A stretch of 64,000 nucleotides of DNA from Eukaryota sp. TZLM1-RC (lineage: Eukaryota > Protista > Metamonada: BaSk clade), in the NCBI GenBank assembly GCA_040285825.1, contig JAUPSS010000004.1, positions 6,843,604 through 6,907,603 of the forward strand, given 5' to 3'. The position numbers and the translations under genes are program-made. Below the pieces are notes generated by a model. The model made no database searches. It had not been told where the DNA came from and worked only from the letters and a program-made list of their open reading frames with translations. How positions within the stretch are numbered: the stretch's first letter is position 1; every line of letters starts with the position of its first letter. Below are positions 17,058 to 64,000 of this stretch, one piece after another.

Positions 17058-17128
17058 GATCAAATGAGATAATTGTTAAGTGGAAGAGTCGAAGTTGAAA
17101 CATGATGGCTGTGGTTTTCATTTGATAC

Positions 17129-19138: not shown

Positions 19139-19294
19139 ATTTGATACATTTCATACTTTCTTCAAACATCATTCAAACTTATTCCAACCTTCATTCTTGG
19201 TGTGATCGTCCACAGATGTTCTAGAATTCTCGAATAATTGGCCACCAATCTCAGTGAGCCCATTTCTCCTCTAGAACAATACGTAGCTTTAGAG

Positions 19295-37530: not shown

Positions 37531-38177
37531 GAAAAAAATATTTATTGAACATCTATGGAAGATGCACACTCAATAAAATTAATTCATAACTAATGGGATG
37601 AAAATCATTGAACCAAGATTTCCTCTAGAAAATCTTGATCTGCTTGCTGTCTAGCTAAAGCTTCTCTAATTCGATTGAAAAATTGAGGTAATCTATTAAC
37701 AATGGCAAATTGAATACGAAAGCGCCATAAAACAATATCACAACTTTTCATTGTTTTTTCTTGAACCATTTTTTGGAGGTCATTCAAAAAAGTTTCTGCT
37801 TCTACTGATAGTCTTCCGTTTATCGAAAATGGGAAAGCAATAAAAACCAGCTGTGTATTTCTATCGACACTTGCCTCTTCAATATCTTTATCATATTTTC
37901 TATGTTTCTCTTTTGCTTTAAAATCCAGAGCAGCCACAGGATTAAGTTTTCTTCTGTGAACCAAAGTATCATTTGCAACATTACATGAGACAAAGTCAAC
38001 AATAGCTTCAGAATTATCAATCCAATCACAGTATACATCACCTCTATCATCAGAACCAAAATTATTCAGAGAAAGTGTTTCCTTCAGCAGGGGCTCTTTG
38101 ATACACGATATCCTTGCAGTTTGTGCCATATTAAAAACAGTGTCTGTTACAGCATCATGTAATGAAGAACGATAAGT
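37531..38177 (-). mobile_element. 5'-truncated RLE non-LTR element (endonuclease domain plus 3' UTR)
   Basis: ORF 37605-38201 is nearly identical to 18520-19081. 10-bp TSD TGCCAGTGTT at 37521-30; the right copy is split as 38178-84 plus 45092-94. Confidence 0.9.
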
Positions 38178-38184
38178 TGCCAGT

Positions 38185-41100
38185 TGTTGTACTGTGGACA
38201 ATTAGTCTAGTACATTTATATTTATATAACATAGTTCACTAGTGATGGCCTTTATAAGGGCCGGTGAATTTCTAATAAATTATTCCTTATTCTTGTTATC
38301 ATATGGATAGAGCATCATTAATTAATGGCTTGAATAGCCACAATGATAACCCTCCTTCCTCTCTGAGGAAGAGTAATGTCCCTTCTTTGAAGGAGAACAG
38401 TCCACCGCCCTCGGTGAGTAATCCTCCACTTGCGGAGAGTAGTCCTTCCTTCGGGAAGAGTAATCCTCCAAAGGAGAGTGAGCTTTCCGCTGAGAAGAGC
38501 ATTGCCTCTCAGAAAGAAAGCCACCTCCTCAATAAGGAGAGTGAACTTCGCACTGAGGAGAGCCCCACCTCCCAGAAAAGAAGTCACCTCCCTTATACGG
38601 AGAGAGGTAACCACGTTGTTGATGTGTCAGAACTATACACATACCCCGACAACTCCTCGGAGCTCCTTCCTTGTAGGAAGAGTTTTCTCACTCCGAGCGA
38701 GCAACGCAGATTCAAAGCGTTTGTTGTAAGTACCAAATCTGACGCTTGTACAGAAGGTGAAGGAGGTGAAGGCGAGCAACAGTCTACGACTGGCTCCTCA
38801 CGTAAAACTCCCTCCCCACCTACTTCTGACATCAGCTCAAGTGAGGAACCTCAAAGTGATTCCAGAGGATCTCTTAATCAGAACTACAGCAGGAGAGGGG
38901 ATGAGAGCGATGATGAACCACCTCATACACCCAATCCTCCTAATCCAACTCCTAGTTTCCCATCTACGGAAAGGACTTCTCAGGGTCTTTACCGCAGGAA
39001 ATTAGCAAAGGCAGTTGAGGCTGTAACTAGAGATTTCTTATTGGACCTCATCGCCAATCCTCCCGAAGATATACTGGATTGGAGTGATGACGAATTACTA
39101 AAAATGGCTGAGAATGAGTCAGAGCGTCTTGCGGGAGACGTAGACCCAGCCGAATGTGAGAAGGTGCGACGTGACTATTTAGCGAAACGTTGGCCCTTCC
39201 TCTTTGGGGAAGCCCACGGCAAAACACTTGACGACGTCGTCTACGAGAGTTATGATCAAAGTCCAAATCTTTTAAAGAGATTGGATGATCTTACCGATTC
39301 GGCAGTCTCGTGTGGAATGAGTGCAGTCGAGGATTGCTATTTTAGCGCACCTCGTTCAAAGTATCAAGCTGCTACTCCCAGGCCTGCCAAATGGCATAGG
39401 GATGCAATTGATGACCACAAAATATATTTCAGTGGAAATCAAGAAGCTTACGACAGACTATTTTGGATAGCTAAAATGTATCCTCATAATCAACAAGGTA
39501 GAAACCTTAGAGGCGTCGTAAGGCATTTCCTAGTGGAGAATGTACACCCAAAAGATTCCATTGCGGACATTCTTATTATGCTGGGGGGCAGATTCGATGA
39601 ATCTCGAGGTGACACCCTTCAATTTCATACCAAAGAGTCCTATATTAGAGAAATAGGCACGAGGGTAATTGAATTGAAAGAGCAACGTGTTGGCCCCAAC
39701 AAGTTAAAACTAGTATACCCTGATGCATGGATGGCTAAACTTAAGGCATGGGTTGATAGCTGGCCCGACCAAAATGTTTTTGAGAATGTCTTAATAAAGA
39801 GCAGTTGCCTTCCATATGATCATAAACTAGCAGGGGTCCCTAGAGGATCTAAAGATGCACCAGATTGGGTGGATTTAAGACCACCAGCCCAGACTGTACC
39901 TGTGCAGGAGGAACCTCCTAAGACAAGATTTATCATAAAGTTGGGCGAAACATTGCCTTCAGAAGAGAGGAATATGAACCTATATAGTACACCTTCTGTA
40001 GGGCCTCTGGCATCTAGGAGAGCTTCTTGTGAAGCAACTCCTACACAAGCATCTGTTATAAAATCATCTATACCCACGCAACCCCTAGGAACGAATGCTC
40101 CTAGAGATTCTCTCGTCGACACCCTCGGTCTTTATAGAACTCCTGTAACAGACGAGGAGAAATTGAGGAAAAGAATAGACGACAAACTTAGATGCCTAGT
40201 TAAGTTAAATGAAGCGTTTGACGCCAAGAAGATCTTCGACTTCGTTCTTAACTTTGGCAATTGGGCTAAAACAGTTAGGGATCGCGATGGACCCACCAGA
40301 GCATTTACGCCGATCACCAAATACGGTCAACCTGTTCATCAGTACGACTTCGTTAGATCTATGTTCTTCGAAGTTGACCCTTTGTATTTGAGATTTATGA
40401 TCGAGGGTAAGGTCATCGCAGAATGGCAGAGTTTTTATGGAGGCCGTACAAACGTGTTAGGCAACAACCCATCTGACGCCGAAATCTGTCAATATTTGCT
40501 ACTCAGCACCCAGTACAAATACCCTACCGATGTTGAGAAGGCTTTAAGGTCTGTAAGACCACCTGAGATCAGTCGCAAAATGTCTGCTGAATCTTCATGG
40601 ACAGCCTTCATAGAGCAGATCATATATATAATTCGACGCTCTACAATTATGCCCGGAACGGATGGTAATCCGTCTGTCGTCTACCCAGCAAAGAGATTTC
40701 TCGAAACTATTAACGACAAAACAAACAATCAATTGATGGACACATATATCATTTGGATTGGTAAGTTTGATTCGAGTAACGAGAAACTGGGCGATGCGAT
40801 TTACGATTTAGGTAACGCATTTGTTAACAAGGTCAATAGCCTTGAATCCTCGATCAAAGACATGAATTTGATTAGAACAGCTTTTGGTGCTCACGCTCCT
40901 GCGCAAAAAGGACGAAGCCAGTCAAAAGGTCCTTTCAAGAACCCTAGAGTAAGCAGTCGACCCATCCCTTCAGAGCAATGGTGTAACTTATGTAAAACCA
41001 ATAAACATCCTGAAGAGAAATGTTTTAAATTAGTGGGAAGACCGGGTTCAAAAAAGCGTCATGGAGGTGAAAGACGTGATAGAAAACGTAAAAGTAGTAG

Positions 41101-44100
41101 TAATAAACCAGATGATTATACATCTTTAAACAATAACCTTACAAATAATTCAATCAAATCCATTTATATAATGAGCAAAACAGATTCGAATTATAATCAC
41201 CTAAATCCATTAAAAAGATTTAGAGAGTCATCCAATCCTGTGGGTTCTATCCACAGTGTTAGACTATCCAGGGTAGCAGAGGACCAAGAAAGTTCTAACG
41301 GGGAACTTTGGTTAACCTGCACCATAAATAACGTGGAAGTACAAGGCGAAATTGATAATGGAGCTGCATTTTCAGCATTATCAATGGATTTAGCCTCTAA
41401 ATGTAATATGACAGTTAATGACAATAAGACTGTCGAATACTTATCGGCAAATGGTATTCGCTCCACGACCCTGGGATGTGCAAGTGGTGTTCTTGCTCTA
41501 AATGTGGGTAGCTTGGCCACTCAAGTGTTTTTAAGGATCGAATTCCAGATCATTCCTGGTACCAATAATTTTTTGATCGGAAGAGACTTATTACAAACCT
41601 TGGGGCTACGCACGGAGCACGGTTTTAATATTAATTTGGATCGCGAACATCGCACCATCTTAAATGCTGAATGTGAGTTTGATAATAGAATTTGTCAACC
41701 AATTAGATTCATTGAACAATTGAGTAATATATCAGACTTAGGTAATGATTTTGGGCATTCCACATTTAGACATGAGTTAGATGAGTTGGGCTGTAGAATA
41801 TGCCTGGATGACATTAGGGACGAGGAACGCCTAGTCGTGCTACTCGAAAAATATAGAAATGTATTTAGTGGGCTACCTCACCCGGATGGAATTGACTGTC
41901 AGCCGATGACCATTCCATTTTATGACGAAAGTAAGGTCGTCAAAAGGAAACCTCGAAGATCAAACCCAGAAAAACAACGGGTAGCCGAGGAAATTTTTAA
42001 CGAATTGATCCGTAATGGATTTGCTGTGCCCGCAAAATCTCAATTCAGTAGTCCCATCTGTCTTGTGATTTACCCTGATCACAGGAAGCCACGATTAACT
42101 GGCGATTTTAGTGGTATTGGTGGAGTAAATGATTTAACTAAACCTGTAGAGGCAAATTTGCCCAGGATTAGCGACATTTTAGAGTTTCTAAGTAAAGCTA
42201 ATTATATAGCAACTCTAGATTTACCTAAGGCATTTTGGCAGCTCAAAATTGCAGAAGAGGATATTGATAAAACTACCGTATCAATTCCCGGAATGTCGAT
42301 CAGTTTTAAAAGGGCTTGTTTTGGTTTGAAGAACGTTCCTGCAGTCTTCCAAAACATGATGATGGAAATATTTGATTCTGAGGGTGTATTTATTTATATC
42401 GATGATATAATAATAGTAGCTTCAACCCTGGATGAATTTCTATCTAGAGTAGGTACGGTCCTAGAACGCGCCAAACGTTTTAGAGTTAACCTTGGCCTAC
42501 CCAAGTGTAGCTTTACCACTTGCAAACATGAAATAAAAATTCTAGGTAGTATTTTTATAAACAAAACCCGTTATATAGATGAGTCTAGGATCGAGGGACT
42601 GATCAACCTACCCAAACCCAGGACATTACCTGAGGTTAGGAGTTTTATAGGTTCGATTAATTATATACGTGACTGGTTGCCAAACTTGTCTGATTTGATA
42701 GAACCAATCAACAAATTAACCAGAAACAAACCGTCAAAGATCAAGTGGACTTCTGATCATGACGAGGCTTTTGGTAAGATTATAAATCTTATCAATGCAA
42801 ATATCCCTCTTGAATTGCCCTCAGAAGACAAGCATATTTTAATAAGTGCTGATGCGTCTGATGTGGCTGTAGGTGGAGTAATATGGCAAGAAGCTAACCC
42901 ACCTAAAGATCCTACGACACCGCTAATTAAGAGAAAGGTTGTACCTATTGCCTTCTTTAGCAGATTATTATCAACTTCACAAAAGAATTGGTCTGTACTT
43001 CAGAAAGAGTTGTATGCAATTTTACTAATTCTCACTGACAGTAGTTTAGAAAATTATTTAATTTCGAGGAAATTAACTATTTTCACTGATCATAGAAATT
43101 TAGCATACCTTATATCAGCTCCTGAAAAGAACAGAATTGTGAAGAGGTGGCTACCAATATCGTCAGAATTCAATTTTGATGTAGTCCACACGGCAGGCGA
43201 GGAGAATTATTGGGCAGACATGTTGTCTAGATTGGTTGATACCAAACCCAAAACCCCTCGAGTCCAACAAGTGAGAAACTTGGCACCTCACAGAGTTGAA
43301 GAACAATTACCCTATTTAAATTTATTAACTAGAGTTAATTTGTTAAGGGATGATATTACTCAACCGTCCACAATTGAGCTACCCACGATCAATAGCTTAT
43401 CTGCACTGAAAGAAGCAGTTGAGGATACTAAATTTGATTTATTTGACACTTGGATCTCAAAGATTAGGCAAGAACAACTTATAGATGTTGATTCAAATCC
43501 TGATTATTATAAAGATTACAATTATAATTCAGATATTCAATTGTATACCAACAATCGTGGGAAGATTGTTATCCCAGATAGTTTAAAGAAGCAGACTTTA
43601 ACTATCATTCATGGACATACAAATGTTGGCCATCCTAGTGTGACGACTAGCGTAAAGAAATTACTCAATAGTGATTACTTTTGGCCCGACATGCGCAAAG
43701 ACATGATTAATCATATTAAGAGATGCCCAGCATGTCAAAAGACGGCACATGTGCCTAAAAAAGTCATTGAATCATCTGGCTCTCTTTGGGCTGATCGACC
43801 TTTTGCACGATTAAATGCAGATACTATTGGACCATTACAACAAGATGATAATGGATTCAAATATTTAATAGTTTTCGTAGATTCGTTCACTAGGTATACG
43901 ATCATTTGCCCTGTAAAGGAATTGAATGCAGTGGAGGCAACCAATCACCTCCTATGGAGTGTAGTATCAATTTTTGGTATCCCACTGTTGATTCATAGTG
44001 ACAATGGTATTGAATTTGCAAATGCCATATTCAAAGGGTTATGCGATTTATTAAACATTGAAGTAAGTCGTTCACTAACTAGCTTTTCACAAAGCAATGG

Positions 44101-45087
44101 ATTAGTAGAAAGACGACACAGAGACATCTTACAAAGTCTAAGAAAGATTTTGGTGGACTCTGGCGATTATAGCAATTGGAGTGAATATATCCCAATTGTA
44201 CAACTTCAAATCAATTCAACTATTAGTAGAGTTACTGGTCATTCGCCCTACAATTTAATGTTTGGTAGCGACCACAGCCCTAGAGCTGATCCTAGTAATA
44301 TGTTTGAATTAATAAAATCAGCTAATGTTAATATTCCCTTTGTTAAAGATCTTGAAGCAAAACTTGAAAGGATTTCAAAGAAGAGAGAAGAGGCAGAGCT
44401 CAGGCAAGCTCAACAACTGCCTGAAGTTAACAAACATAGGAACCCTTTTAATAAAGGTGACTTAGTTCTGCGATTAAAGACTAATGGTAAACTCCATGAC
44501 TTGCTTCGCTGGCCCTTTTCTCGTTGAAGACGTTAAATCCAATAAAAGTTTATTACTCAAGAATCTTGTCACTGGTTCGATGTCTACGGCAAGTATAAAT
44601 CATTGTAAACTATACCTTTCAGACTTCCCTAAAGAAGATCTTGATTGGCATAAGAATATTGCTGCTGGCGATATGGAAGAATCTGTAATCGTTAAAATTA
44701 TAGATCACTTTGATTACGTAAATTCGAACAATAATAAAGTTCCTTATTGTACCGCAGTTTGGTATGGCGGCGAGACTTCGTCTGTCCCAGTTGCTGACGT
44801 CAAAAGCACTGAGGCATATCAAACATATTTGCGCTCTATTAGTCCTCACACTACCAGGAAACGGAAGGTATCTTCTAATTCCAAATCTAAGACTAATTCC
44901 CCTGCAGTCAGTACTCGTAGCTCTCGTTCGAGATCTAAGAGAGGGAAAAGGTAGTGTTGTACTGTGGACAATTAGTCTAGTACATTTATATTTATATAAC
45001 ATAGTTCACTAGTGATGGCCTTTATAAGGGCCGGTGAATTTCTAATAAATTATTCCTTATTCTTGTTATCATATGGATAGAGCATCA
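38185..45087 (+). mobile_element. Full-length young Ty3/Gypsy LTR retrotransposon (6.9 kb)
   Basis: Identical 133-bp LTRs at 38185-38317 and 44955-45087. TSD CAGT at 38181-84 and 45088-91. PPT aagagagggaaaaggtag. Confidence 0.97.
38303..44954 (+). CDS. Gag-Pol polyprotein (single frame; one +1 frameshift near 44500 before the GPF/chromo-like tail)
   Basis: CNLCKTNKHPEEKC knuckle, protease IDNGA, RT LDLPKAF/YIDD, RNase H DASD, integrase H-H-CPAC with D, D and E. GPF and VIVKIIDH..CTAVWYG lie in ORF 44484-44954. Confidence 0.95.
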
Positions 45088-46603
45088 CAGTGTTTTAATT
45101 GTTCCAGACCCAAAAAGTATGCCGAGTTTGTACTTCAAGATGATCAACTGGATTTCTTAATTTAACAGTAATATCAAGAAATGCACCAGCTTATCTTGAC
45201 CCATTGGCTAAATTTGACAATAAATGCCTATATTAATCGGGGTCAAAATCTATTGGAAAAATCAATAAGAAATGAACGACTTACCATCAATATGAAAACT
45301 CCGGCCACAAGTTTTTCAATCAGGACTGAATATTTTATGTTTTCTAGAAGAGAACTCCCCTGAGCTCATGAAAAGGCACTCTCTCTCTCGCCTTTATCCA
45401 GTTGGTCTCCATGCTTCTGCAGTTTGGAAAAAAAGCCGAATCTTATTTCACAAAGCTAAATGAAATCAAAAACCTTCTAAACAACCCTTATCGGTTTTTT
45501 AATAAATCCAAATTTATCAACTATACTATTTTTTCAAATGGTGATTCTTTGCGGTTCATGTTCATTCAGAAGGCAAGGAAAACGTATAATTGCCCGACTG
45601 AAGCGGAATTTGAGTCGAGACGTGTCTCTGGAAATTATGAGTTCCATAACTCTGAAAAAAAAAGAAAAAAAATGTAATGTCCAGAGAAAAGCAGATTCAC
45701 AGCAGAGAACACAGTTACCAGTGGATGAACAGTTTCATTATTGAGATTCTGATGAAAATTTGTTTTTTATAGCAATCTTTGCATTGTTGGTTCTTTCAGA
45801 AATTCTGCACCTGTATTTAACGGTACTGGCCTGCTGCTGAACCCAAAAGAACGAAAATAAAATCATCCTCCTTCTCTCACTCAAGCAACTCCTAATTGTT
45901 ATTCCGCTCAGAGCTTCCAAGAGTATCTAATTGAAATAAGTTTACCTTATGTTTCGGAATCTGAGGAAGGGTCTGAATATGCTTCAATTAGGTGTGGAAA
46001 CCTGCAGTGTGGTGCAAGAAAAAAATAACATACATGTAGAAGAAATAAGTTTGATTTTTTCATACGAAAACAAAAGAGACTAACTAAATTTATTAACAAA
46101 ATTAAACGCTTGTCTGAAGGAAGAAACACTATAGTTGGGTTCGGCAATGGCGGCGGTGGTCCATCTCGTCAAGCTGTGAAATCCCCCAGATAGTGATTTC
46201 TCAAACAAATCCAAAAACACTCTGAAAACGTCAAAGTGCGGGACGAGTTTATGACCTCAGCAAAAATGAATTGCTGTAAGGTCTTTCATAGAAAGATATA
46301 TCATGATGACGGAAGGGTAAATAACCCTAAGTTCGATTGTCATCGGTGTCAGACCAACTGGTCTAGGAACATCTCAGCCTCTAGAAATCAGCAGGAGATT
46401 GTAGTCAGTGAGTATTTCACTGGTACTAGGCCAGAACCATTCCGAAGACCAAGGTGTGAAAGACGTCTAAGAAGACAGCAGTAGCTGTTTTCATCAACGT
46501 ATTTCCAAGGTGTTTAGTGTATACTGACCCCTGGTGCTGAGAAGTTGACATCAGTTTTGGTGATATTTATTCAATATCCATTGGATGCGAAATTCTCAGT
46601 TTG

Positions 46604-51091: not shown

Positions 51092-51430
51092 AAATTTATT
51101 TATTTATTGAACTTGCACACTTAACAAAATAAACTGATAACTAATGGGACGAAATTCATTGAACCAAGATTTCCTCTACAAATGCTTGATCTACTTTCTG
51201 TCTAGCTAAAGCTTCTCTAATTCGATTGAAAAACCGAGGCAACCTATTAATAATGGCAAATTGAATTCGAGGGCGCCATAAAAAGATATCAAATCTTTTC
51301 ATTTTTTTCTTGAACCATTTGTTGGAAATCATTCAAAAAAGTTTCTGCTTCTACTGATAGTCTTCCATTAATAGAAAATGGGAAACCAATAAAACAAGTG
51401 GTCTATTTCTATCAGCATTAGCTTCTTCTT
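51092..51430 (-). mobile_element. Short 3' fragment of the RLE non-LTR family
   Basis: Matches 18810-19135. (TAAA)n tail. 11-bp TSD TTTCTTTTATT at 51081-91 and 51431-41. Confidence 0.85.
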
Positions 51431-52448
51431 TTTCTTTTATTCAAGACTCTTTTCTGATGTTTCAACTCAATAATTAATAGCATTTCTGAGAACAACAATA
51501 ATCGTGCGGTCAATCCTGTCAATAGTGAAAATGTCGCAGTGATTTTTTTCAACTTTCTTGGTTACTGCTTATGTGATGTGTCTAAATTTCTCAATGAATA
51601 ACAAGGTATTTTGCAATAGACAAACAATGAACTCAAAATGTATTTCTCAGTTAGCCATAATTGAAAAATTAAGGAGTAATTGTTTGAAAACTAAAACAAT
51701 CACTTATTACCAACACTACCGCTCGTCTCTCAACTTTTGAAGAATATATTTAAAAACACATTAAATTTTTACTCAATCCAAATTGAAAATCATTCTCCAA
51801 TTCAATTTTGTCTAATTCATTGATGAAGTTATTTGCTTCATGGTGCCTTTGTGTAACCATTCTTGATACTTTTCTGCATTGAAATCAATGATCCAAGCCC
51901 AGATTTCAATAACCACAAAAAACATAAAGCAGTTCATCCACCACCAAACAGACTTACATTAATTGAATAATTAACACAATCATCGGAGAAATCGTTGTTT
52001 TGTGGAATTGTTTTGGCAACACTTTTTAAATAAACAAGAAATCAAAAGCTTTAGATTTGGAAGAATATTTCACATTTGTTATGCTAAAAATTCGTTACTC
52101 TGGAAAATAACTAACATTTTGAGCTCTTTTCCTGCTTCTACAATTTTTGACTTTTATTTATTCTTCAACTCGATTAAAACAGAATTTTCTAGATTTTGGA
52201 GCAGAAATGACAACACTCATCTTTATTGTGTATCTAATTTGGACTAATTCACATTCTATTCTGCACTGATGTGATTTTTCTCAAAATCACAAGAACCATA
52301 ATCTTTATAAAAACAGCAAAATTAAAAAATAAACAATAAATTACAGACCCTAGAATAAAAGGAAAGCTAAAAAATGGGAACTATTCAGACCAAATACTAT
52401 AAACAAGTAAATCAAAAATAACATTAAAATTAATAAAAAAACAAAAAC

Positions 52449-55400
52449 TTATTTAAAGAGAAGGACTTTTAAAACCTTCAATACTCTCAAATCACGATCA
52501 ACTAACCTCAACAAAACAGCAGTAGAAGATTTGCAAGATACCTGTACACCAAACTCTGAGGCAACAAGTGAAGGTAGGCATCTAAAACAATTTTCAATAG
52601 GAAAAACAATTTTCGGACTACTCGATATTAATTTGCATTCAGAAACAGCTTCTTTAAAACCATTTATAGTTATTGTTTGTTTTGAAAAGGAAGCACATAA
52701 ACTGATTTCATGAACTTCAGGGCAAAATGGTTCTAGAAGGTACGATAAAAATTTTCCAAAACTAGCCGTATACAAAAAACAACCCAGAAAAGACACATTA
52801 CTAGCGACTTTACCAGAGAAGTGACCCCCGTTGGAAAAACAAAGGTCAACTGAAGGTACACCTGATGCAATGATATCAGTGGGAGAAATACCATCAAAGT
52901 TTTGATTGAAGGAGAAATCATAGTCAACTGAATTCTGCTGAATTTCTGACCTGATGACCCCTTCAACAATCAGAGGCTGAATATCAATTTCCACATCTAA
53001 TTCGTTAACCATTTGGCTACCATCAAAGATAGAAACAGTAGTACAAATTGTTTTTGGTTTATGTGTTCTACTGGTGTGATCACGAAAAAGAGGAGCTTTC
53101 CATGACTCACTGGGATTTGGAGTAATAGTGGCATTTTGCTTGGACCGGAAATAGACATACTTTTCATCATCAATTAAAACTTCCAACGACACAACCACAC
53201 AATCATTTGATTCGAGATATAATAACCCCACATTACCATCAACATACAGTACTTCTTCCTCGACACTCAAATTCTTTCTCTTCTCATAAGACCTTAATGC
53301 CCTTACTCTGGTTGAATTAGGAAAAGAAATAAAACTACAAGAAGAGGATACGGTAAGCAACTTTGAACAATTGAACAGATTGGTAACAGAAAATTCTAAA
53401 AGTGCTGGCTCCCCATAAGATGCATTCACCTTAAACTTTCTTGGCCTATCAGCTACTAGTGACACTGGAGCAGAAATAGGATTTAATGTCGAAGGAGAGC
53501 CAAGGTCATAAATCTGACGTGGAAAGGTCAAAACTGAGTTAGAATTTCCATGAGTGGATTTAAAACTTAATTTTCGAGCGATAGACAAATGAAGGTAACC
53601 CAAGCAATGTCCTTCTTGTTTGTTGGAAATAATTGGAAACTCTGCAGAAATTTTCAATAAACTTCTAGGTGTACTGAAATTAAACTGCAAAGAATCCATC
53701 GAAACTTTACAATACCCAATGCTAGAAATGGTATCAGCATCAAAAACATCAATAAAAACAGAGTGATTAGCCAATTGTCGCTCTGTACGGTGGAAAATTT
53801 CATTGTTAGAATGATTGACTCTAAATGCTACATCAATACCATAACAGACCTTATTCGAATTAATCAGAAAAGATGGAATTAAAATCATTGGATTCGGCTT
53901 TTCAGATGACGTCATTGATGGATTTTGGTCCAAAATGGTCAAACAAGGAGTACAAAGTGGTTCAAAACTTAGAAAATTGACATTTAAATAAATATTTTTT
54001 ACAGAATTTAAAAGTTTTTTTGAGCGAAATTCAGCAGCAATAATTGAAAAAAGAAACTCCGAATTACACGGAAAATTGGATAATAGTTCTCGAGGAGCAG
54101 TACTCGCGACAGGAACAACAACCAAATTGGCTTGATAATCATCAATCAAATGATCAGTTTCCTGTGCATTCTTGACTGTTGACATCATAAAGGCCAGTCT
54201 ACCGCGCGTGGCTGTTCTCATTGATGGATTTAATTCAAGTTCATGGTCAGAAGGTTGATCTGAAACAGATTGAATAAAAGATTCATTTAAAGGGCTATCC
54301 TTTGCTTCCAAAGAACTTTCCTGTTTAGTTGAAACAGTATCAGATGACTTGACATCCACTTGATTGTCATCAAATTTTGTTTGATCATCAGCAACATCCA
54401 CTTGATTGTCATCAAATTTTGTTTGATCATCAGCAACATCTGATTGATTGTCATCAAATTTTGATTGATCATCAGCAACATCTGATTGATTGTCATCAAA
54501 TTTTGATTGATCATCAGCAACATCTGATTGATTGTCATCAAATTTTGATTGATCATCAGCAAAGCTAATGTTGGTTGAAATTCTGTCAAAAACGCCCTCA
54601 AAAGAAAGTGAATTTATTTGGTTTTGAACAATATCATCACCATTAAATTCAGCTTCACCAAGAAGAACAGTAAACAAAGAAGAAAGTTCTTCAACATCAT
54701 TGTTAACCTTTTTCCCTTTTTTAATTCCCTTGACAGATTTGGTAATTGTCAACTCAATATTGAATTTGATAGAAACCTTGATTCTAGAAGATGCATAAAA
54801 TGAAAGGAAGCAGTTAGTATCTTTTAAAATATTGGAATCAGCAAAATTAAAAACAACTTTTACGATTTGAGTATTCAAAACCCCAGAAAAAACTTTGAAT
54901 TCTAAAAAACGCTCAACAATCATAGGAGGACTCGAAATGTCAAAATTCAAACTGAAATGTTTGGAAATCTGCTGCAATAGCAAAGATTCATCTAGTTTAG
55001 TCTGAAATGAAAAACTCGATATTTGACAGGTAGATGGCTGTAGTAAAGACATGTTTGAATAGAACAAAATATTATAGTAAACCTCACCATCATGTTGGTA
55101 TTCTGCATGTAATAGATTATTACCCTCCTTTATATTAGGAAGAACAGGAAACTCACCCGGTTCAAAGCAATTCAACCTATCAAATGCTGATACTGGAACC
55201 TTTAGGGGTAATAACGAACCATTATCACAGACTGGAGAATGCCTGAACCCATACGAAAGGTGACCGGGAATGACCGGAAGCTTAATATTAGGGTTAGTTA
55301 GCAATCCAACACATGAAGGTGCATAGAGAAATGTCGTAGCAAAGGAAAGGGCGGCGGTGGAAAGAGATTTGGAAGAAGGACATGGAAAAAAATACCATCC

Positions 55401-55751
55401 CACTGATTGAGGGATTGAGGAAGGATTGGAAGTAGAGAGGAGAAATTCAATGATGATTAAGCATTTGGTGTCAGTGGGTACACGTATAACGAGAGGATAA
55501 TTGAGAATAGCAGAAATACCAGACAGGGAATCATTTGGAAAACCTGGAAGAGCAACACCACACTCTTCTGGAAAAAAAATGTATGGTGACATACTCTGTT
55601 GTGTATGAAAAGTGTGTTCGTGAAAGACATATGAATGTACCTCAAGATTGATTTGGTCAAGAGAAGAAATACTTTGTAGAAGTGAAGTCGGTATCGGTAG
55701 ATTACTCACTGAGTGTAAAAGAATGTAAACAATGCGTTCCCTTGAGGTCAT
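52449..55751 (-). CDS. NPHP4: Nephrocystin-4-like ciliary transition-zone protein
   Basis: C2-like segments (IIIEF..SVGWY; VFIDVFDADTISSIGYCKVSM) and ASYGEPALLEFSVTN of the C-terminal Ig-like region. First ATG is at 55751. Confidence 0.65.
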   Translation of the reverse strand: MTSRERIVYILLHSVSNLPIPTSLLQSISSLDQINLEVHSYVFHEHTFHTQQSMSPYIFFPEECGVALPGFPNDSLSGISAILNYPLVIRVPTDTKCLIIIEFLLSTSNPSSIPQSVGWYFFPCPSSKSLSTAALSFATTFLYAPSCVGLLTNPNIKLPVIPGHLSYGFRHSPVCDNGSLLPLKVPVSAFDRLNCFEPGEFPVLPNIKEGNNLLHAEYQHDGEVYYNILFYSNMSLLQPSTCQISSFSFQTKLDESLLLQQISKHFSLNFDISSPPMIVERFLEFKVFSGVLNTQIVKVVFNFADSNILKDTNCFLSFYASSRIKVSIKFNIELTITKSVKGIKKGKKVNNDVEELSSLFTVLLGEAEFNGDDIVQNQINSLSFEGVFDRISTNISFADDQSKFDDNQSDVADDQSKFDDNQSDVADDQSKFDDNQSDVADDQTKFDDNQVDVADDQTKFDDNQVDVKSSDTVSTKQESSLEAKDSPLNESFIQSVSDQPSDHELELNPSMRTATRGRLAFMMSTVKNAQETDHLIDDYQANLVVVPVASTAPRELLSNFPCNSEFLFSIIAAEFRSKKLLNSVKNIYLNVNFLSFEPLCTPCLTILDQNPSMTSSEKPNPMILIPSFLINSNKVCYGIDVAFRVNHSNNEIFHRTERQLANHSVFIDVFDADTISSIGYCKVSMDSLQFNFSTPRSLLKISAEFPIISNKQEGHCLGYLHLSIARKLSFKSTHGNSNSVLTFPRQIYDLGSPSTLNPISAPVSLVADRPRKFKVNASYGEPALLEFSVTNLFNCSKLLTVSSSCSFISFPNSTRVRALRSYEKRKNLSVEEEVLYVDGNVGLLYLESNDCVVVSLEVLIDDEKYVYFRSKQNATITPNPSESWKAPLFRDHTSRTHKPKTICTTVSIFDGSQMVNELDVEIDIQPLIVEGVIRSEIQQNSVDYDFSFNQNFDGISPTDIIASGVPSVDLCFSNGGHFSGKVASNVSFLGCFLYTASFGKFLSYLLEPFCPEVHEISLCASFSKQTITINGFKEAVSECKLISSSPKIVFPIENCFRCLPSLVASEFGVQVSCKSSTAVLLRLVDRDLRVLKVLKVLLFK
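54345..54561 (-). repeat. Coding minisatellite, about 5 x 42 bp (ADDQSKFDDNQSDV)
   Basis: Direct tandem repeat visible in DNA and protein; each unit consists of two related 21-bp halves. Confidence 0.95.
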
Positions 55752-55778: not shown

Positions 55779-56098
55779 CGAGAGTACAGTGCTATGGTAC
55801 CCAAAAATACATGCTAATAAATCTACTGTGAATTTCACTTATCATGCATTCCCCTGTGAAATTCACTCCTGTTTTCAACTCCCTCAGTGTCTACTCACAG
55901 GCTGTAAGAGACATGTAGCATCATTTGACAAAGACAATCATGATCTTCATCAATGGGCTACCTCACTTAAATACACCTGCTGCTTTCACAGAACAAAGCC
56001 TCGCGACTTGATGTATCTAAGTGGATCTACCAAATGCTACTAGGGCATTTGTAGATCATTCTCAAAAGTTTTTGTTTCTGTATGCTCAGGTTCCCCAT
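55779..56098 (-). ncRNA. Candidate omegaRNA (scaffold plus flank-derived guide) of Fz-D
   Basis: Consecutive stems at 56024-56057, 55964-56023, 55915-55961, 55888-55913 and 55828-55866, plus a closing stem 56079-91/55799-811. Several pair through G-U only on the Fanzor-sense strand. Confidence 0.65.
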
Positions 56099-58054
56099 TC
56101 ATCTTCTCAACAGAGCATCTGGGCAAATGTATCTTTCCGGCCACAATTCCGCTTTCTTCTTAATTTGAATATTTTTTGCAGCGGAAATATCTCTGTCATA
56201 TACTATTTGACACTCAGTACAAATACGCATCTGCCATGAGCCTGCTTGAAGATTCTCGGCCATGCAACAACTTGACATTTTGCTTGTATTAAATTCACTG
56301 GTTGACAAGTGCTTCACGTCCTTTTGATAACACAACCATTTTCTGAAAGCCCTTGCTGATCCATATCGATTGACTTTTCGGCAATGAGAAGGGAAATTAG
56401 CAGAACCCACAGCAAGATAGAGTTTTTCAGGATGTCCAGCCAGCCTTTGAAATTTGTTGAGACTCTCTCTGAACCGTCTCTCTTTTCGTCTGCGATTATC
56501 AAATTTAATTATTTTCCATTTCTGGCGATTACTTTCCAAATACACTTTCCTCCTGACCAAATTCCAATGGTTCAAATATTGGTTGAAATTTTGAACGGAA
56601 TATTGGTTGGGAGAGTGTTTACTGGGTGAAGGTTTTGTCCTGTACCTCCTGCTAGTTGGATAAGGGATAACACCACATTGATCATCAGTTAAGAAGTAAC
56701 CACATAATCTTGATTGGCCCAGATCAACACCAATAAGGGGCATTTCAGGTAAAATTTCGACTGGATGTCTACGTCTTCGACGGGGCATTTTTTTAGTACC
56801 CTTCAACTGTGTTTCTCTGGTTTTGTTGGCATTAGGGTCACTTTTCATTTCATTTTTTGATCTTCTTTTCTTTTTCGGTGGTTCATCCAGCTCATCTGTG
56901 TTTTCTGAGTCATTATTTTTACCTTCAAAGGTCAAAAGCAGTTCATTACCATTAGTTTTCAATAAAATTTTGTTAAATCTATTTTTCAAACTTTTTCTGT
57001 TGATATTGAATTTTTGGTAAGGACATTGTTTGAATATTCGTTTCAGACATGTATTTTTGATAAACTTTGTTTTGGAAGATGATCCTTCAATAATTGGAAA
57101 TTTTTTCACAGAGTGGAAAATTTGTGAAGGTACCTCAATAAATTTAGAACCTTTATGAGAAGCTAAAGGTATTATTCTGAATTTCTTCCAGCAATGCATA
57201 TGAGAAAAGAAGGTGAGTAAGTATTGTGAAATTTTAAGATTAAAGAGAAAAAGTTCACTAATTTCCTTTGATGAAAAAGTGATTTTATCATGTGAGGACA
57301 GTAGGGAGGCAGTGGTAGGAAATCTTTGAAAGAGATTCAAGATAAACTTACATGCATTTAATAAGAAGAATCTTTCTCTTGAATTATTCAAATTGAAATT
57401 GATGAGGTATTCAAGAACAGAATCAACTACTACTTCCTCGGGTTGGGCTAGTGGTTCATCTGGCAAAAGTGAAAGAATATTATTTGCAAAGACATTTGTT
57501 TTATCCAGGGCTCTACAATGAGCACGAATAAAGTTTTTTGTCCAGGATTGACAAATTTTAGGTAAACTTGTCTTCACGTTGGAGGCCAATTGACGAGCCC
57601 GACAAGCAAGGTAAGGAGAAAACCCTTTTCTATTGATAAAATTACAGTTCTGGGACTGCAGCCAATCATTGAGGAAAAGATTGAATGAATTTCTGTAAGG
57701 CACTAAAGAATTTTCCCACACAGAAACAAGAGACCTGTCTTGTGGGCATTCAGAAAGAAATCCATTGTAAAAGATATGGAGTAATTGGCGTTGGCCTTTA
57801 GATGTGGAAGGCTTAGGAAAAGAACCAGTGGTGATGACGGTCATAAACAGATACCATGCATCCTGTTCCACTAAAGCTCTAGATGCCAACGGAAAATTTA
57901 GAAGAAAAGATTGAAGTAATAAAGAAGCTTCATGACAAATCTCGGTGACCACAGGAAGGTCAGTCCGAATTTGTTGCACCGCTGCAGGGGTCAGCAGCGA
58001 GTCAAGTGCACAAGACCGAGTGAATACACGTGACACAGAGTGGGTGTCTGTCAT
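56099..58054 (-). CDS. Intact Fanzor-like RNA-guided nuclease (Fz-D, 651 aa)
   Basis: KTNG, NLS-like PPKKKRR and RRRRR, RuvC-I LIGVDLG, LAVGSANF, RuvC-II SEFNTSKMSSCC, CTEC and RuvC-III YDRDISAAKNI. Confidence 0.88.
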   Translation of the reverse strand: MTDTHSVSRVFTRSCALDSLLTPAAVQQIRTDLPVVTEICHEASLLLQSFLLNFPLASRALVEQDAWYLFMTVITTGSFPKPSTSKGQRQLLHIFYNGFLSECPQDRSLVSVWENSLVPYRNSFNLFLNDWLQSQNCNFINRKGFSPYLACRARQLASNVKTSLPKICQSWTKNFIRAHCRALDKTNVFANNILSLLPDEPLAQPEEVVVDSVLEYLINFNLNNSRERFFLLNACKFILNLFQRFPTTASLLSSHDKITFSSKEISELFLFNLKISQYLLTFFSHMHCWKKFRIIPLASHKGSKFIEVPSQIFHSVKKFPIIEGSSSKTKFIKNTCLKRIFKQCPYQKFNINRKSLKNRFNKILLKTNGNELLLTFEGKNNDSENTDELDEPPKKKRRSKNEMKSDPNANKTRETQLKGTKKMPRRRRRHPVEILPEMPLIGVDLGQSRLCGYFLTDDQCGVIPYPTSRRYRTKPSPSKHSPNQYSVQNFNQYLNHWNLVRRKVYLESNRQKWKIIKFDNRRRKERRFRESLNKFQRLAGHPEKLYLAVGSANFPSHCRKVNRYGSARAFRKWLCYQKDVKHLSTSEFNTSKMSSCCMAENLQAGSWQMRICTECQIVYDRDISAAKNIQIKKKAELWPERYICPDALLRR

Positions 58055-58261
58055 GTAGTGAGAATAAAGAGCTCATCTATCAAATTTTACACTTGTCACC
58101 CCATTTTCGACTTCTGGTTGCCTGTTCTGGGAGGTTTTTAACCCTCAACTTGGTTTTGGGAGGTTTTCACTATTCCCACACTTTCCCCTCACTTCATAAA
58201 CTAGGTTCATAAACTAGGTATCCTTTGTAAAAGTTTCTGGAATTTCAACTCTATGTAACTC

Positions 58262-58690
58262 ATGAAAGACGCTCTCAGCATCATCAACAAATTAGTCCAC
58301 GATACTTTTTTGTCTAAAGAACGTTTCTTTGTTGGTTTTGAGGATAGATTTGGCGGTGTATTCTTCCTCCCTCTTCACGATTTTCTTGCCTTATCTGTAC
58401 CATCTCACAGAATTCGCTACATATCTAAGGAAACTCAATTCTCTGGTCTCGCACAAAACGAATCAACCTTATTGGCTCTGTTGCACCTTCTGTTTCTTTA
58501 TTCTCATCTCCAACACCTGGTGTTCTCTCCCGATATTTTCCTCCTCATGCTACTGGTAGAAAGAATTTCCAGTTACCCTTCTTCTCTAACATTGTTTCTT
58601 GTAGTGTAGGTGTTCATCATACATTGGCACTCACTGCTTGTGGTAATTGCTATGGATTTGGTCTGAACAAATCTACCAATTAGGCAACAA
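58262..58690 (+). pseudogene. MJ1316/DUF504-like domain fused to RCC1-like repeat, frameshifted and truncated
   Basis: IINKLVHD..FFVGFEDRFGG..VPSHRIRYI, then in a shifted frame LWSRTKRINL and IVSCSVGVHHTLALTACGNCYGFGLN. Confidence 0.55.
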
Positions 58691-59224
58691 CTACACTTAA
58701 AGCAGCACTTTCAAACCGTTTTCCTAAGATTTTTTAGAAATTCAATCAATTTCTCTATCCTAAATGAACCCTGGAGAAAACCATAAGTCGAAATGCTATA
58801 CGACACGTGTGGATAAGGTTTGTCAAGTGGGATAAAGGTAGTTAGTGTTCATCATCTACTGAGATTTTATGTTATTATTGATTAGCTACTTGCTTCAATT
58901 GTGATGTATCCAGGACAATTCCACAGAAATGATACTATCAATAATGATTGAAGTTTGTTAATAATAATTGAGTTCTGCGAAACAGTGAAAAGATTTCTGT
59001 ATGTATGTTATCATGAAGCTTCAGTTGTTTTGATGAACACACAACCATCCTTTCATGAACAGCAGTTATAAATCCTCTATTAATGAGAAAAACATTAAAA
59101 CAGCCAACAAAAGATTCACATATTTACACTGTTGTGACAGCATGTCAATGCTAAAACATTAAAATCAAATAATTAAGCCATATTTATTTCTATGCAATAC
59201 AAATCCAACTATCCTTGTTGTTGC

Positions 59225-62200
59225 ATTGAATGTTGCAAACTAATAAAACCATTGCTGTAAGTGTAAGAGTATCGTTTTTGATACGATTTACTGAGGCTCA
59301 TATGAAGTTCCTAGTTTCGTATATTGACCAATGGTTGTTTATTACAATCATTGGTCAAATCTTTAAAGTCCATTTTGGGACAATTAATATAACAATTGTG
59401 GTGTTAAAGTCCGTGCTATGATCATTTGAGTAGTCATTGGTATGATTGGTTGAATGGTCATTGGTGTGATTAGGTGAGTTGCATGTAGTCCTTATGTACT
59501 AGATGTGATCAACTTGTGATCAAACTTTGTGTGAAATTGTGTGTGAGTAATGTTGGCTATGTGTTACTTGATCAGTACAAACTCATGATTACATTTTCAA
59601 TTGATTTTGTATATATTTGAATTAATTGAGTGTATTAATTTTTAAACATTAAATTGTAAAAAAAGTAAAAAATCAAAAAGTATACAATTGAATGTTGCAA
59701 ACTAATATAACCATTGCTGTAAGTGTAAGAGTATCGTTTTTGATACGATTTACTGAGGCTCATATGAAGTTCCTAGTTTCGTATATTGACCAATGGTTGT
59801 TTATTACAATCATTGGTCAAATCTTTAAAGTCCATTTTGGGACAATTATTATAACAATTGTGGTGTTAAAGTCCTTGCTATGGTCATTTGATTAGTGATT
59901 GGTATGATTGGTTGAATGGTCATTGGTATGATTAGATGAGTTGCATGTAGTCTTTATGTACTAGATGTGATCAACTTGTGATCAAACTTTGTGTGAAATT
60001 GTGTGTTAGTAATGTTGGCTATGTGTTACTTGATCAGTACAAACTCATGATTACATTTTCAAATGATTTTGTATATATTTGAATTAATTGAGTGTATTAA
60101 TTTTTAAACATTAAATTGTAAAAAAAGTAAAAAATCAAAAAGTATACAATTGAATGTTGTAAACTAATAAAACAATTGCTGTAAGTGTAAGAGTATCGTT
60201 TTTGATACGATTTACTGAGGCTCATATGAAGTTCATAGTTTCGTATATTGACCAATGGTTGTTTATTACAATCGTTGGTCAAATCTTTAAAGTCCATTTT
60301 GGGACAATTATTATAACAATTGTGGTGTTAAAGTCTGTGCTATGGTCATTTGAGTAGTCATTGGTATGATTGGTTGAATGGTCATTGGTATGATTAGATG
60401 AGTTGCATGTAGTCTTTTGTCCATTTTGGGACAATTAATATAACAATTGTGGTGTTAAAGTCCGTGCTATGGTCATTTGAGTAGTCATTGGTTTGATTGG
60501 TTGAATGGTCATTGGTATGATTAGATGAGTTGCATGTAGTCTTTATGTACTAGATGTGATCAACTTGTGATCAAACCTTGTGTGAAATTGTGTGTGAGTA
60601 GTGTTGGCTATGTGTTACTTGATCAGTACAAACTCATGATTACATTTTCAAATGATTTTGTATATATTTGAATTAATTGAGTGTATTAATTTTTAAACAT
60701 TAAATTGTAAAAAAAGTAAAAAATCAAAAAGTATACAATTGAATGTTGTAAACTAATAAAACAATTGCTGTAAGTGTAAGAGTATCGTTTTTGATACGAT
60801 TTACTGAGGCTCATATGAAGTTCCTAGTTTCGTATATTGACCAATGGTTGTTTATTACAATCATTGGTCAAATCTTTAAAGTCCATTTTGGGACAATTAA
60901 TATAACAATTGTGGTGTTAAAGTCCGTGCTATGGTCATTTGAGTAGTCATTGGTATGATTGGTTGAATGGTCATTGGTATGATTAGGTGAGTTGCATGTA
61001 GTCCTTATGTACTAGATGTGATCAACTTGTGATCAAACTTTGTGTGAAATTGTGTGTGAGTAGTGTTGGCTATGTGTTACTTGATCAGTACAAACTCATG
61101 ATTACATTTTCAATTGATTTTGTATATATTTGAATTAATTGAGTTATTAATTTTTAAACATTAAATTGTAAAAATAGTAAAAAATCAAAAAGTATACAAT
61201 TGAATGTTGCAAACTAATATAACCATTGCTGTAAGTGTAAGAGTATCGTTTTTGATACGATTTACTGAGGCTCATATGAAGTTCCTAGTTTCGTATATTG
61301 ACCAATGGTTGTTTATTACAATCATTGGTCAAATCTTTAAAGTCCATTTTGGGACAATTAATATAACAATTGTGGTGTTAAATTCCGTGCTATGGTCATT
61401 TGAGTAGTCATTGGTCTGATTGGTTGAATGGTCATTGGTATGATTAGATGAGTTGCATGTAGTCTTTATGTACTAGATGTGATCAACTTGTGATCAAACT
61501 TTGTGTGAAATTGTGTGTGAGTAGTGTTGGCTATGTGTTACTTGATCAGTACAAACTCATGATTACATTTTCAATTGATTTTGTATATATTTGAATTAAT
61601 TGAGTTATTAATTTTTAAACATTAAATTGTAAAAATAGTAAAAAATCAAAAAGTATACAATTGAATGTTGCAAACTAATATAACCATTGCTGTAAGTGTA
61701 AGAGTATCGTTTTTGATACGATTTACTGAGGCTCATATGAAGTTCCTAGTTTCGTATATTGACCAATGGTTGTTTATTACAATCATTGGTCAAATCTTTA
61801 AAGTCCATTTTGGGACAATTAATATAACAATTGTGGTGTTAAAGTCCGTGCTATGGTCATTTGAGTAGTCATTGGTTTGATTGGTTGAATGGTCATTGGT
61901 ATGATTAGATGAGTTGCATGTAGTCTTTATGTACTAGATGTGATCAACTTGTGATCAAACTTTGTGTGAAATTGTGTGTGAGTAGTGTTGGCTATGTGTT
62001 ACTTGATCAGTACAAACTCATGATTACATTTTCAATTGATTTTGTATATATTTGAATTAATTGAGTTATTAATTTTTAAACATTAAATTGTAAAAATAGT
62101 AAAAAATCAAAAAGTATACAATTGAATGTTGTAAACTAATAAAACAATTGCTGTAAGTGTAAGAGTATCGTTTTTGATACGATTTACTGAGGCTCATATG

Positions 62201-64000
62201 AAGTTCATAGTTTCGTATATTGACCAATGGTTGTTTATTACAATCGTTGGTCAAATCTTTAAAGTCCATTTTGGGACAATTATTATAACAATTGTGGTGT
62301 TAAAGTCTGTGCTATGGTCATTTAAGTAGTCATTGGTATGATTGGTTGAATGGTCATTGGTGTGATTAGGTGAGTTGCATGTAGTCCTTATGTACTAGAT
62401 GTGATCAACTTGTGATCAAACTTTGTGTGAAATTGTGTGTGAGTAATGTTGGCTATGTGTTACTTGATCAGTACAAACTCATGATTACATTTTCAATTGA
62501 TTTTGTATATATTTGAATTAATTGAGTGTATTAATTTTTAAACATTAAATTGTAAAAAAAGTAAAAAATCAAAAAGTATACAATTGAATGTTGCAAACTA
62601 ATATAACCATTGCTGTAAGTGTAAGAGTATCGTTTTTGATACGATTTACTGAGGCTCATATGAAGTTCCTAGTTTCGTATATTGACCAATGGTTGTTTAT
62701 TACAATCATTGGTCAAATCTTTAAAGTCCATTTTGGGACAATTATTATAACAATTGTGGTGTTAAAGTCCTTGCTATGGTCATTTGATTAGTCATTGGTA
62801 TGATTGGTTGAATGGTCATTGGTATGATTAGATGAGTTGCATGTAGTCTTTATGTACTAGATGTGATCAACTTGTGATCAAACTTTGTGTGAAATTGTGT
62901 GTTAGTAATGTTGGCTATGTGTTACTTGATCAGTACAAACTCATGATTACATTTTCAAATGATTTTGTATATATTTGAATTAATTGAGTGTATTAATTTT
63001 TAAACATTAAATTGTAAAAAAAGTAAAAAATCAAAAAGTATACAATTGAATGTTGTAAACTAATAAAACAATTGCTGTAAGTGTAAGAGTATCGTTTTTG
63101 ATACGATTTACTGAGGCTCATATGAAGTTCATAGTTTCGTATATTGACCAATGGTTGTTTATTACAATCGTTGGTCAAATCTTTAAAGTCCATTTTGGGA
63201 CAATTATTATAACAATTGTGGTGTTAAAGTCTGTGCTATGGTCATTTGAGTAGTCATTGGTATGATTGGTTGAATGGTCATTGGTATGATTAGATGAGTT
63301 GCATGTAGTCTTTTGTCCATTTTGGGACAATTAATATAACAATTGTGGTGTTAAAGTCCGTGCTATGGTCATTTGAGTAGTCATTGGTTTGATTGGTTGA
63401 ATGGTCATTGGTATGATTAGATGAGTTGCATGTAGTCTTTATGTACTAGATGTGATCAACTTGTGATCAAACCTTGTGTGAAATTGTGTGTGAGTAGTGT
63501 TGGCTATGTGTTACTTGATCAGTACAAACTCATGATTACATTTTCAATTGATTTTGTATATATTTGAATTAATTGAGTGTATTAATTTTTAAACATTAAA
63601 TTGTAAAAAAAGTAAAAAATCAAAAAGTATACAATTGAATGTTGCAAACTAATATAACCATTGCTGTAAGTGTAAGAGTATCGTTTTTGATACGATTTAC
63701 TGAGGCTCATATGAAGTTCCTAGTTTCGTATATTGACCAATGGTTGTTTATTACAATCATTGGTCAAATCTTTAAAGTCCATTTTGGGACAATTAATATA
63801 ACAATTGTGGTGTTAAAGTCCGTGCTATGGTCATTTGAGTAGTCATTGGTTTGATTGGTTGAATGGTCATTGGTATGATTAGATGAGTTGCATGTAGTCT
63901 TTATGTACTAGATGTGATCAACTTGTGATCAAACTTTGTGTGAAATTGTGTGTGAGTAGTGTTGGCTATGTGTTGACTTGATCAGTACAAACTCATGATT
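59225..64000. repeat. Satellite array, 461-462 bp monomer, more than 10 copies, runs off window
   Basis: Equivalent positions at 59230, 59692, 60154, 60743, 61204, 61665, 62126, 62588, 63050 and 63639. Two monomers carry an internal 127-bp duplication. Confidence 0.97.

Follow-up and report, generated by a model that had tools for sequence, protein, structure and literature searches.

A divergent Fanzor carried by a non-autonomous DNA transposon of Skoliomonas litria, with a candidate omegaRNA at its 3′ end

The genome of Skoliomonas litria TZLM1-RC, a soda-lake flagellate, contains a Fanzor element in dozens of copies, one of which lies in the 64,000-nt stretch of DNA analyzed here (the window). 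The initial annotation had read this copy as a complete, transposase-less Fanzor-like nuclease of a divergent subfamily, followed by a structured omegaRNA candidate. This raises the questions of which branch of the Fanzors the protein belongs to, where the element and its RNA end, and how an element of this kind is inserted and maintained. The enzyme class is known; the Skoliomonas branch, its host group and the odd insertion pattern appear to be undescribed. No paper in the searched literature joins Fanzor with Skoliomonas, metamonads or TZLM1, and the genome paper makes no mention of the family. Coordinates are window positions, and features lie on the minus strand unless stated otherwise.

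The Fanzor protein and its relatives

The protein (P0006) is encoded at 58054-56099 by a frame open over 651 codons, and its PF07282 score is 28.5 bits (cut-off, 26.3). The sequence features named in the initial annotation were all found in place. GVDLG begins at residue 442 and contains D444 (RuvC-I; 56723-56725), which is D in 13 of 14 close copies; SEFNTS at 586 contains E587 (RuvC-II; 56294-56296), and DRDISAA at 620 contains D622 (RuvC-III; 56189-56191), kept in close copies. The zinc ribbon at 56210-56275 is atypical, S594-S-C596-C597...C612-x2-C615 (SSCC at 594-597, CTEC at 612-615). Its first cysteine is replaced by Ser in every Skoliomonas family and is followed by an invariant CC pair. 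The catalytic triad and the four cysteines are kept both in close copies and across families. Two basic, NLS-like runs, PPKKKRR (392-398) and PRRRRRH (424-430), lie within 56765-56881; the first is kept in strain GEM-RC, and both may act as nuclear localization signals.

These motifs follow the pattern of the TnpB/Fanzor superfamily, a split RuvC D-E-D with a C4 ribbon ahead of RuvC-III, D-x(125-275)-[TS][TS]-xx-C4-x(5-50)-RD, here as D444, T590-S591, four cysteines in the order S-x-C-C...C-x2-C, and RD at 621-622. A rearranged glutamate that precedes the zinc finger by six residues is specific to Fanzors (PMC10711439). In the window protein E587 is followed by six residues and then by S594-x-C-C, an arrangement invariant across families, and the spacing between the RuvC D and E also agrees with published Fanzor signatures. 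The DPG at RuvC-I, nearly exclusive to Fanzors, is replaced by DLG in the window protein and in its GEM-RC relative. This is a derived change, since the nearest families of strain RCL have DPG or DPN. Fanzor1 proteins have a WED motif described as "TDG" (PMC10711439), an enlarged REC and 600-800 aa. The window protein has TNG at residues 367-369 (56948-56956), a helical N-terminal 300 aa and a length within this range; its relatives have TDG, SDG or SNG, with TDG at the WED position in P0056 and P0087.

Profile comparisons point the same way. The RuvC region matched ApmFz2 (E 2.9e-6, the best long match), SpuFz1 (E 1e-3) and PpFz1 over long stretches, whereas most matches to TnpB and Cas12 covered the ribbon only. 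A profile from the WED to E587 had no match in the PDB. The ESM features of P0006 were nearest (0.98) to ESM Atlas clusters of giant-virus PF07282/DUF8286 proteins (206/256), which are of similar length; phmmer found no alignable similarity to these proteins among 1.84 billion proteins, and no viral locus was found. The comparison with TnpB, Fz1 and Fz2 proposed in the initial annotation was favorable for the PF07282 and Fanzor profiles and for the top structural rank of TnpB (Z 9.3, followed by ApmFz2 at Z 8.8, with Cas12j also among the best), but the AlphaFold models behind the structural search were poor (pLDDT 45 and 39), and Foldseek with the predicted model returned no match at E<=0.001. 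From its sequence, P0006 is a divergent Fanzor. It is probably a Fanzor1, a placement set by motifs and profiles, with a family tree that covers Skoliomonas sequences.

Selection on the protein agrees with this reading. Between the window family and GEM-RC, pN is 0.29 and pS 0.71 (saturated), and variants shared among copies within the TZLM1 genome comprise 20 synonymous and 10 replacement changes. The Fanzor ORF is therefore under purifying selection both between species and within the genome. Together with homology and motif spacing, this supports the earlier reading of a divergent Fanzor-like nuclease.

P0006 belongs to an 82-member TZLM1-RC protein cluster, of which the majority are fragments. 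Relatives share 58% identity in GEM-RC and 22-40% in families of RCL, and further families occur in all three genomes. A full HMMER search of 1.84 billion proteins returned 29 matches, from Skoliomonas wherever checked, except for one weak 121-aa Logan fragment; HMMER and phmmer found no full-length relative outside Skoliomonas in this set. Pattern searches of metagenome and viral contigs, which reach close relatives only, found none. The family is a multicopy mobile element of eukaryotic genomes, as is typical of Fanzors, and has host genes as flanks. In the nearest sister clade, RCL protein P0064 (KAL0209630.1; 1323 aa) joins an XPG/EXO1-like nuclease (XPG_N/XPG_I at 99-322) to a full Fanzor (581-1309) with 30% identity to the window protein, and at L007:3923-7980 this same fusion is split into two called genes. 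A resection nuclease fused to Fanzor would favor homing. The window itself holds two broken Fanzors of a P0054/P0149-like family, at 37083-46600 (plus strand) and 20837-19313. The former is interrupted by non-LTR and Gypsy elements and ends in GAAATTCTCAG a few bases ahead of the start of a HECT gene.

Element ends, target sites and captured DNA

The ends of the element were determined from ten copies and their ten junctions (the window copy, six others from TZLM1 and three from GEM). The right end falls on the same base in all ten copies and in both species, at CACAG, position 55826 in the window; aligning the copies, as the initial annotation had suggested, therefore fixed this boundary. Copies end in GAAATTCACAG, followed by TA in nine and TT in one, and the right terminal inverted repeat (TIR) of the window copy is GTGAAATTCACAG (55826-55838). 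The adjoining TA (55824-55825) is the right copy of the target site duplication (TSD) and, on the model of other Fanzor1 RNAs (PMC10711439), probably belongs to the scaffold. At the left, full-length TZLM1 copies show TA|CTGTGGTTGAATTT, which imperfectly repeats the right end in inverted orientation; in the GEM copy L004 this inverted match is perfect over 11 bp. The element therefore has termini CTGTG...CACAG, short imperfect TIRs (~12 bp) and a 2-bp TSD, usually TA after TAT. It measures about 3.4 kb in the window and 3.6-3.8 kb when whole.

The TSDs vary. Three copies have TSDs of 2-3 bp; four have longer ones (11, 7, 7 and 4 bp), each running from TA onward and mostly joined to the left end through 1-5 nt of microhomology; two truncated copies and the window copy have none. 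L006 has TT on both sides, and copies of an RCL family have AT/AT and AA/AA, so the 2 bp are a true duplication that is not strictly TA. Short TIRs, and TA in most copies, would fit an IS630-Tc1-mariner element with its strict TA TSD; the TT, AT and AA sites and the four longer TSDs fit it less well. The hallmarks of Fanzor2/IS607 elements (serine recombinase TnpA, GG ends, no TSD) are absent. No transposase was found within the element by six-frame reading or by tblastx of the left arm against the GEM and RCL arms, which bears out its earlier description as transposase-less, and a scan of ten neighboring genes found no DD(34)E transposase that shares its ends. On these searches a transposase hidden in the left arm was rejected; the arm holds CCT and MJ1316-RCC1 fragments. 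Retrotransposition, considered because of the 5′ truncation and variable TSDs, is disfavored by complete copies with TIRs and 2-bp TSDs and by the lack of a tail and of 3′ transduction. The element is a non-autonomous DNA transposon carrying a divergent Fanzor.

The left arm (58055-59223) consists of captured host DNA. It is common to other TZLM1 copies, absent from GEM-RC and unalignable with the GEM left arm, and copies differ by nested deletions of it. It holds a CCT chaperonin fragment and, on the other strand, an MJ1316-RCC1 fragment (58262-58683, plus strand) that forms a 140-aa ORF in L001 and L012 and is frameshifted in the window copy, which is 1 bp shorter at about 58426. The longest arm, in L012 (7325-7700), extends the CCT chaperonin coding region by about 280 bp, annotated as a gene. 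The element is complete at its ORF and right end, but not at its left: full-length copies reach 270-380 bp beyond 59223, so the window copy has lost at least 270 bp. A satellite, which the truncated arm abuts, stands in place of the lost end. DNA contigs from three runs continue past 59223 into the missing part. A left end at 58060-58225 was ruled out, as homology continues to 59223 and beyond. The satellite (59225-64000, no strand assigned) has a 462-bp unit with a 127-bp internal duplication and a very high contig depth (thousands); it is absent from other copies and was ruled out as part of the element. By a coarse measure on DNA contigs, depth increases toward the 3′ end: it is 17 over the left arm, 50 over the ORF and about 100 over the RNA region.

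The five TZLM1 left junctions read TATTA (three copies), TTTTA and TATT, against a background of 2.7% TATTA among TA sites. The TAM, predicted as the sequence left of full-length copies, would be TATTA / WTTA, in line with CATA for SpuFz1 (PMC10432273) and TTA for KnFNuc. On the other side, the right end lies 43-122 nt ahead of a same-strand host ATG in five of ten copies, compared with 4.4% at non-coding TTA sites, a background that includes much unannotated repeat. In the window this gene is NPHP4-like (52449-55751), with its ATG 73 nt past the right end. Three of ten flanks start with TIR-like sequence (background 0.35%), a pattern chosen after seeing the data. The idea that such flanks are ends of neighboring transposons found no support in the DNA examined. 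The combination of truncation and TSDs has a precedent in CRe-1,2,3 of Chlamydomonas, where it was left unexplained (PMC3627910); variable TSDs have been speculated to result from Fanzor cutting (PMC10288648).

Other elements and repeats occur nearby. A multicopy non-LTR retroelement with a reverse transcriptase and a restriction-like endonuclease tail is found in the window (17080-19140, 37550-38180 and 51100-51437) and at L003:10228-12247; in L003 a copy of it is inserted within the Fanzor right end with an 11-bp duplication, and in L012 others lie 104 nt past that end. A Gypsy-type element at 38185-45087 has a gag-pol frame open over 2074 aa between two LTRs of 133 bp that are identical, and a copy in L001 is 96% identical to it. 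The NPHP4-like gene contains a 42-bp minisatellite (54352-54562) coding an acidic repeat. A 753-bp duplication (31058-31810 / 32045-32797; 98.8%) in an XMAP215-like ORF is a recent tandem duplication or an assembly artefact. Copies of the RCL family (L008:4496-7884 and L010:2067-5884) have CTGGGG...CACAG ends and are inserted at TTG-AT and TTG-AA; their 3′ region, at about 105 nt, is much shorter, and an ATG follows the right end after 3-5 nt.

The candidate omegaRNA and its guide

As in other Fanzors, a conserved, structured non-coding region extends from the end of the ORF to the right end of the element, with variable flank beyond. Conservation, folding and covariation delimit a candidate scaffold of about 240 nt (55826-56063, 5′ end approximate). 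It comprises helices at 56057-56024, 56023-55964, 55961-55915 and 55866-55828, with a short closing helix (56063-59/55912-08). The fold of the 239-nt scaffold has a z of -4.1, compared with -2.1 to +0.3 for ORF windows, and the GEM scaffold reaches -6.5 and -7.5 in sense and -3.0 in antisense. Between species the RNA core is identical at 175 of 220 positions (80%), at a distance where synonymous sites are saturated.

The consensus structure has 74 pairs with 98.6% of cells paired (controls slid by 1-3 columns, 35-43%); it was derived from the same alignment that scored covariation. Two-sided changes occur at five pairs, among them C-G to G-C at 56013/55974, in the 14-bp stem named by the initial annotation, and C-G to U-A in the last hairpin before the right end. 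Many other substitutions between the species affect one side of a pair, which is then preserved only as a sense-strand G-U. Independent covariation events are few because only two lineages are available. Both conservation of the 3′ region and covariation, which the initial annotation had proposed to look for among copies, were found, and these data support a structured omegaRNA under sense-strand selection. The argument from strand holds for the cross-species comparison but not for the window copy alone, whose z is similar on both strands.

Individual structures fared differently. The proposed 14-bp stem, which includes two G-U pairs, joins 56023-56010 to 55977-55964. All five proposed stems fold in the window copy, but only four are kept in GEM-RC; about 55913-55887 is specific to TZLM1 and corresponds to a 20-nt gap in GEM. 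The long-range stem proposed between 56079-91 and 55799-811 can be drawn (12 of 13 pairs, three of them G-U), but its 3′ arm falls in host flank, 13-25 nt beyond the end of the element. Pairing is weaker with the flanks of all other copies, and 4.7% of random 44-mers reach as good a pairing. The sequence proposed as guide, 55798-55779, belongs to the host and lies 25 nt farther downstream than it should. Since the element ends at 55826/55824, the initial annotation had misplaced the RNA boundary, the closing stem and the guide. Instead, the guide is predicted to be the first 15-20 nt of host flank, GATTTATTAGCATGT... (55804-55823). A start at 55823 would follow from the element boundary and from analogy with Fanzor1 RNAs, which include the TSD (PMC10711439); a guide length of 14-15 nt has been given (PMC13565253).

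How the element may move, and what it resembles

The most probable explanation, in which we place considerable confidence, is a non-autonomous transposon with a Fanzor1-type OMEGA module, homing repair and a transposase acting in trans. A transcript of the 3′ end would fold into the ~240-nt scaffold, ending at the right TIR and TA, and would run 15-20 nt into host DNA as a guide. The resulting RNP would recognize the AT-rich TAM (predicted as TATTA / WTTA) followed by a match to the guide, the arrangement of the empty insertion site, and would cut this site; the chromatid or homolog that bears the element would then serve as repair template, so that the element is restored or copied. Repair that proceeds from the right flank and ends early by end joining may leave precise right ends, truncated or deleted left arms and longer TSDs. 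New sites would be reached by a cut-and-paste transposase in trans. Evidence for homing has been listed for TnpB and IscB only; in-vivo homing of Fanzors in eukaryotes is inferred, not shown (PMC13565253).

Alternatively, the Fanzor RNP may help to build new insertions: its cut would provide the target nick(s), TAM and cut would set motif and TSD, repair would be one-sided, and a DDE transposase would play little or no role. Elements would then settle sense-wise just upstream of host ATGs, and each guide would come from the leader of the host gene. Long TSDs that begin at TA and show microhomology to the left end fit this proposal, as do the target-type bases in the first two TIR positions of two of four full-length left ends (rough chance 4e-4) and the fusion of a sister clade to an XPG/EXO1-like nuclease. 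In Chlamydomonas the same TSD pattern is found only in Fanzor-bearing elements (PMC3627910). The RCL sister family shares CTG...CACAG termini but has different target sites, so the target motif would follow the Fanzor family, although the two species may have different transposases; the excess of TIR-like flanks counts in favor too, but was defined post hoc. However, a DDE transposase would account for TIRs and concordant 2-bp TSDs (TA, TT, AT, AA), a guide taken from the donor flank is unable to direct cutting at an unrelated new site, and TSDs of 4-11 bp are shorter than the Fanzor1 cut distances of 14-21 nt (PMC10432273). We consider this role for the RNP unlikely.

Less likely still is a non-autonomous, rolling-circle element like the Helitron2-related CRe-1,2,3, in which the TA would belong to the element end. 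The 5′ truncations, over-represented 3′ ends, internal deletions, variable TSDs, 3′ hairpin and capture of host genes (as fragments of CCT chaperonin and MJ1316-RCC1) agree with CRe-1,2,3, but the inverted repeat is terminal and not 20-30 bp inside, TT/TT in L006 and AT/AT and AA/AA in RCL are true duplications, the 5′ fold is weak with no stable hairpin, and no RepHel partner was seen. We see hardly any room for hairpins that are DNA-level transposon ends or chance structures beside a protein that is not RNA-guided. The similar z on both strands of the window copy and the lack of an Rfam match to the scaffold would allow it, whereas the sense-strand G-U pairs, a GEM antisense fold weaker by about 30 kcal/mol and 240 nt conserved despite saturated synonymous sites argue against it. 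Much more plausible, at somewhat below an even chance, is that the family once had a working Fanzor system of which the window copy is a decaying, inactive insertion. Besides its missing left end, frameshifted cargo ORF and membership in a cluster mostly of fragments, it has 27 private substitutions in 3.4 kb, of which 9 replacements and 4 synonymous changes fall in the ORF; C465Y and G468S alter residues that are C and G in all 14 close proteins, and two changes at 56059-58 break the short closing helix. Yet all 651 codons are open, the triad, four cysteines and four conserved hairpins are intact, and part of its private differences may be errors of the Nanopore-based assembly (16 contigs, 55% repetitive; PMC11316075), since the element is a repeat. 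Judged from the sequence, the window copy is about equally likely to be active or inactive.

One of the closest counterparts is the Fanzor1 element Spu-1 with SpuFz1 (PDB 8GKH; PMC10432273). Both have a single ORF of about 640-650 aa, TIRs and TA, no transposase, an RNA located between stop and right TIR, and conserved bases left of TA that give the TAM (CATA in Spu-1; TATTA, predicted, in Skoliomonas); D383/N385 of SpuFz1 correspond to IDPN of sister Skoliomonas families. In contrast to Spu-1, there is no pairwise similarity and only a profile match (E 1e-3), the TIR is about 12 bp and imperfect instead of 30 bp, the conserved scaffold spans about 240 nt instead of a 75-80 nt region, and the element has DLG, an S-x-C-C ribbon and a long host-derived left arm. 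The Fanzor1 elements CRe-1,2,3 (PMC3627910) likewise keep intact 3′ ends beside 5′ truncations, internal deletions and variable TSDs after an AT-rich motif, but are Helitron2 derivatives with introns and no TSD when complete, unlike the intronless Skoliomonas element with TIRs and 2-bp TSDs. MCi-2 and MCi-5, Fanzor1 elements of Mucor (PMC3627910), share the conserved 3′ and variable 5′ ends and TSDs starting AT-rich, but have no TIRs and fixed TSDs of 11-12 or 6 bp. Fanzor2/IS607 (ApmFz2, PDB 9B0L) resembles the window protein in its rearranged RuvC-II glutamate and long profile match, and has a large conserved 3′ RNA (about 200 nt; PMC10530073), whereas the Skoliomonas element has no serine recombinase or GG ends, and has an AT-rich target, a longer helical N-terminus and TNG.

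The Skoliomonas family represents a Fanzor1-like branch that has diverged too far to be recognized by pairwise comparison; its zinc ribbon is rearranged and its candidate scaffold is large. Since its ends, predicted TAM and predicted guide start can be read from the copies, the family is ready for nuclease testing. With a culturable host and dozens of 97-98% identical copies that have variable TSDs, the question of TSDs raised by CRe-1 in 2013 becomes testable in a second lineage.
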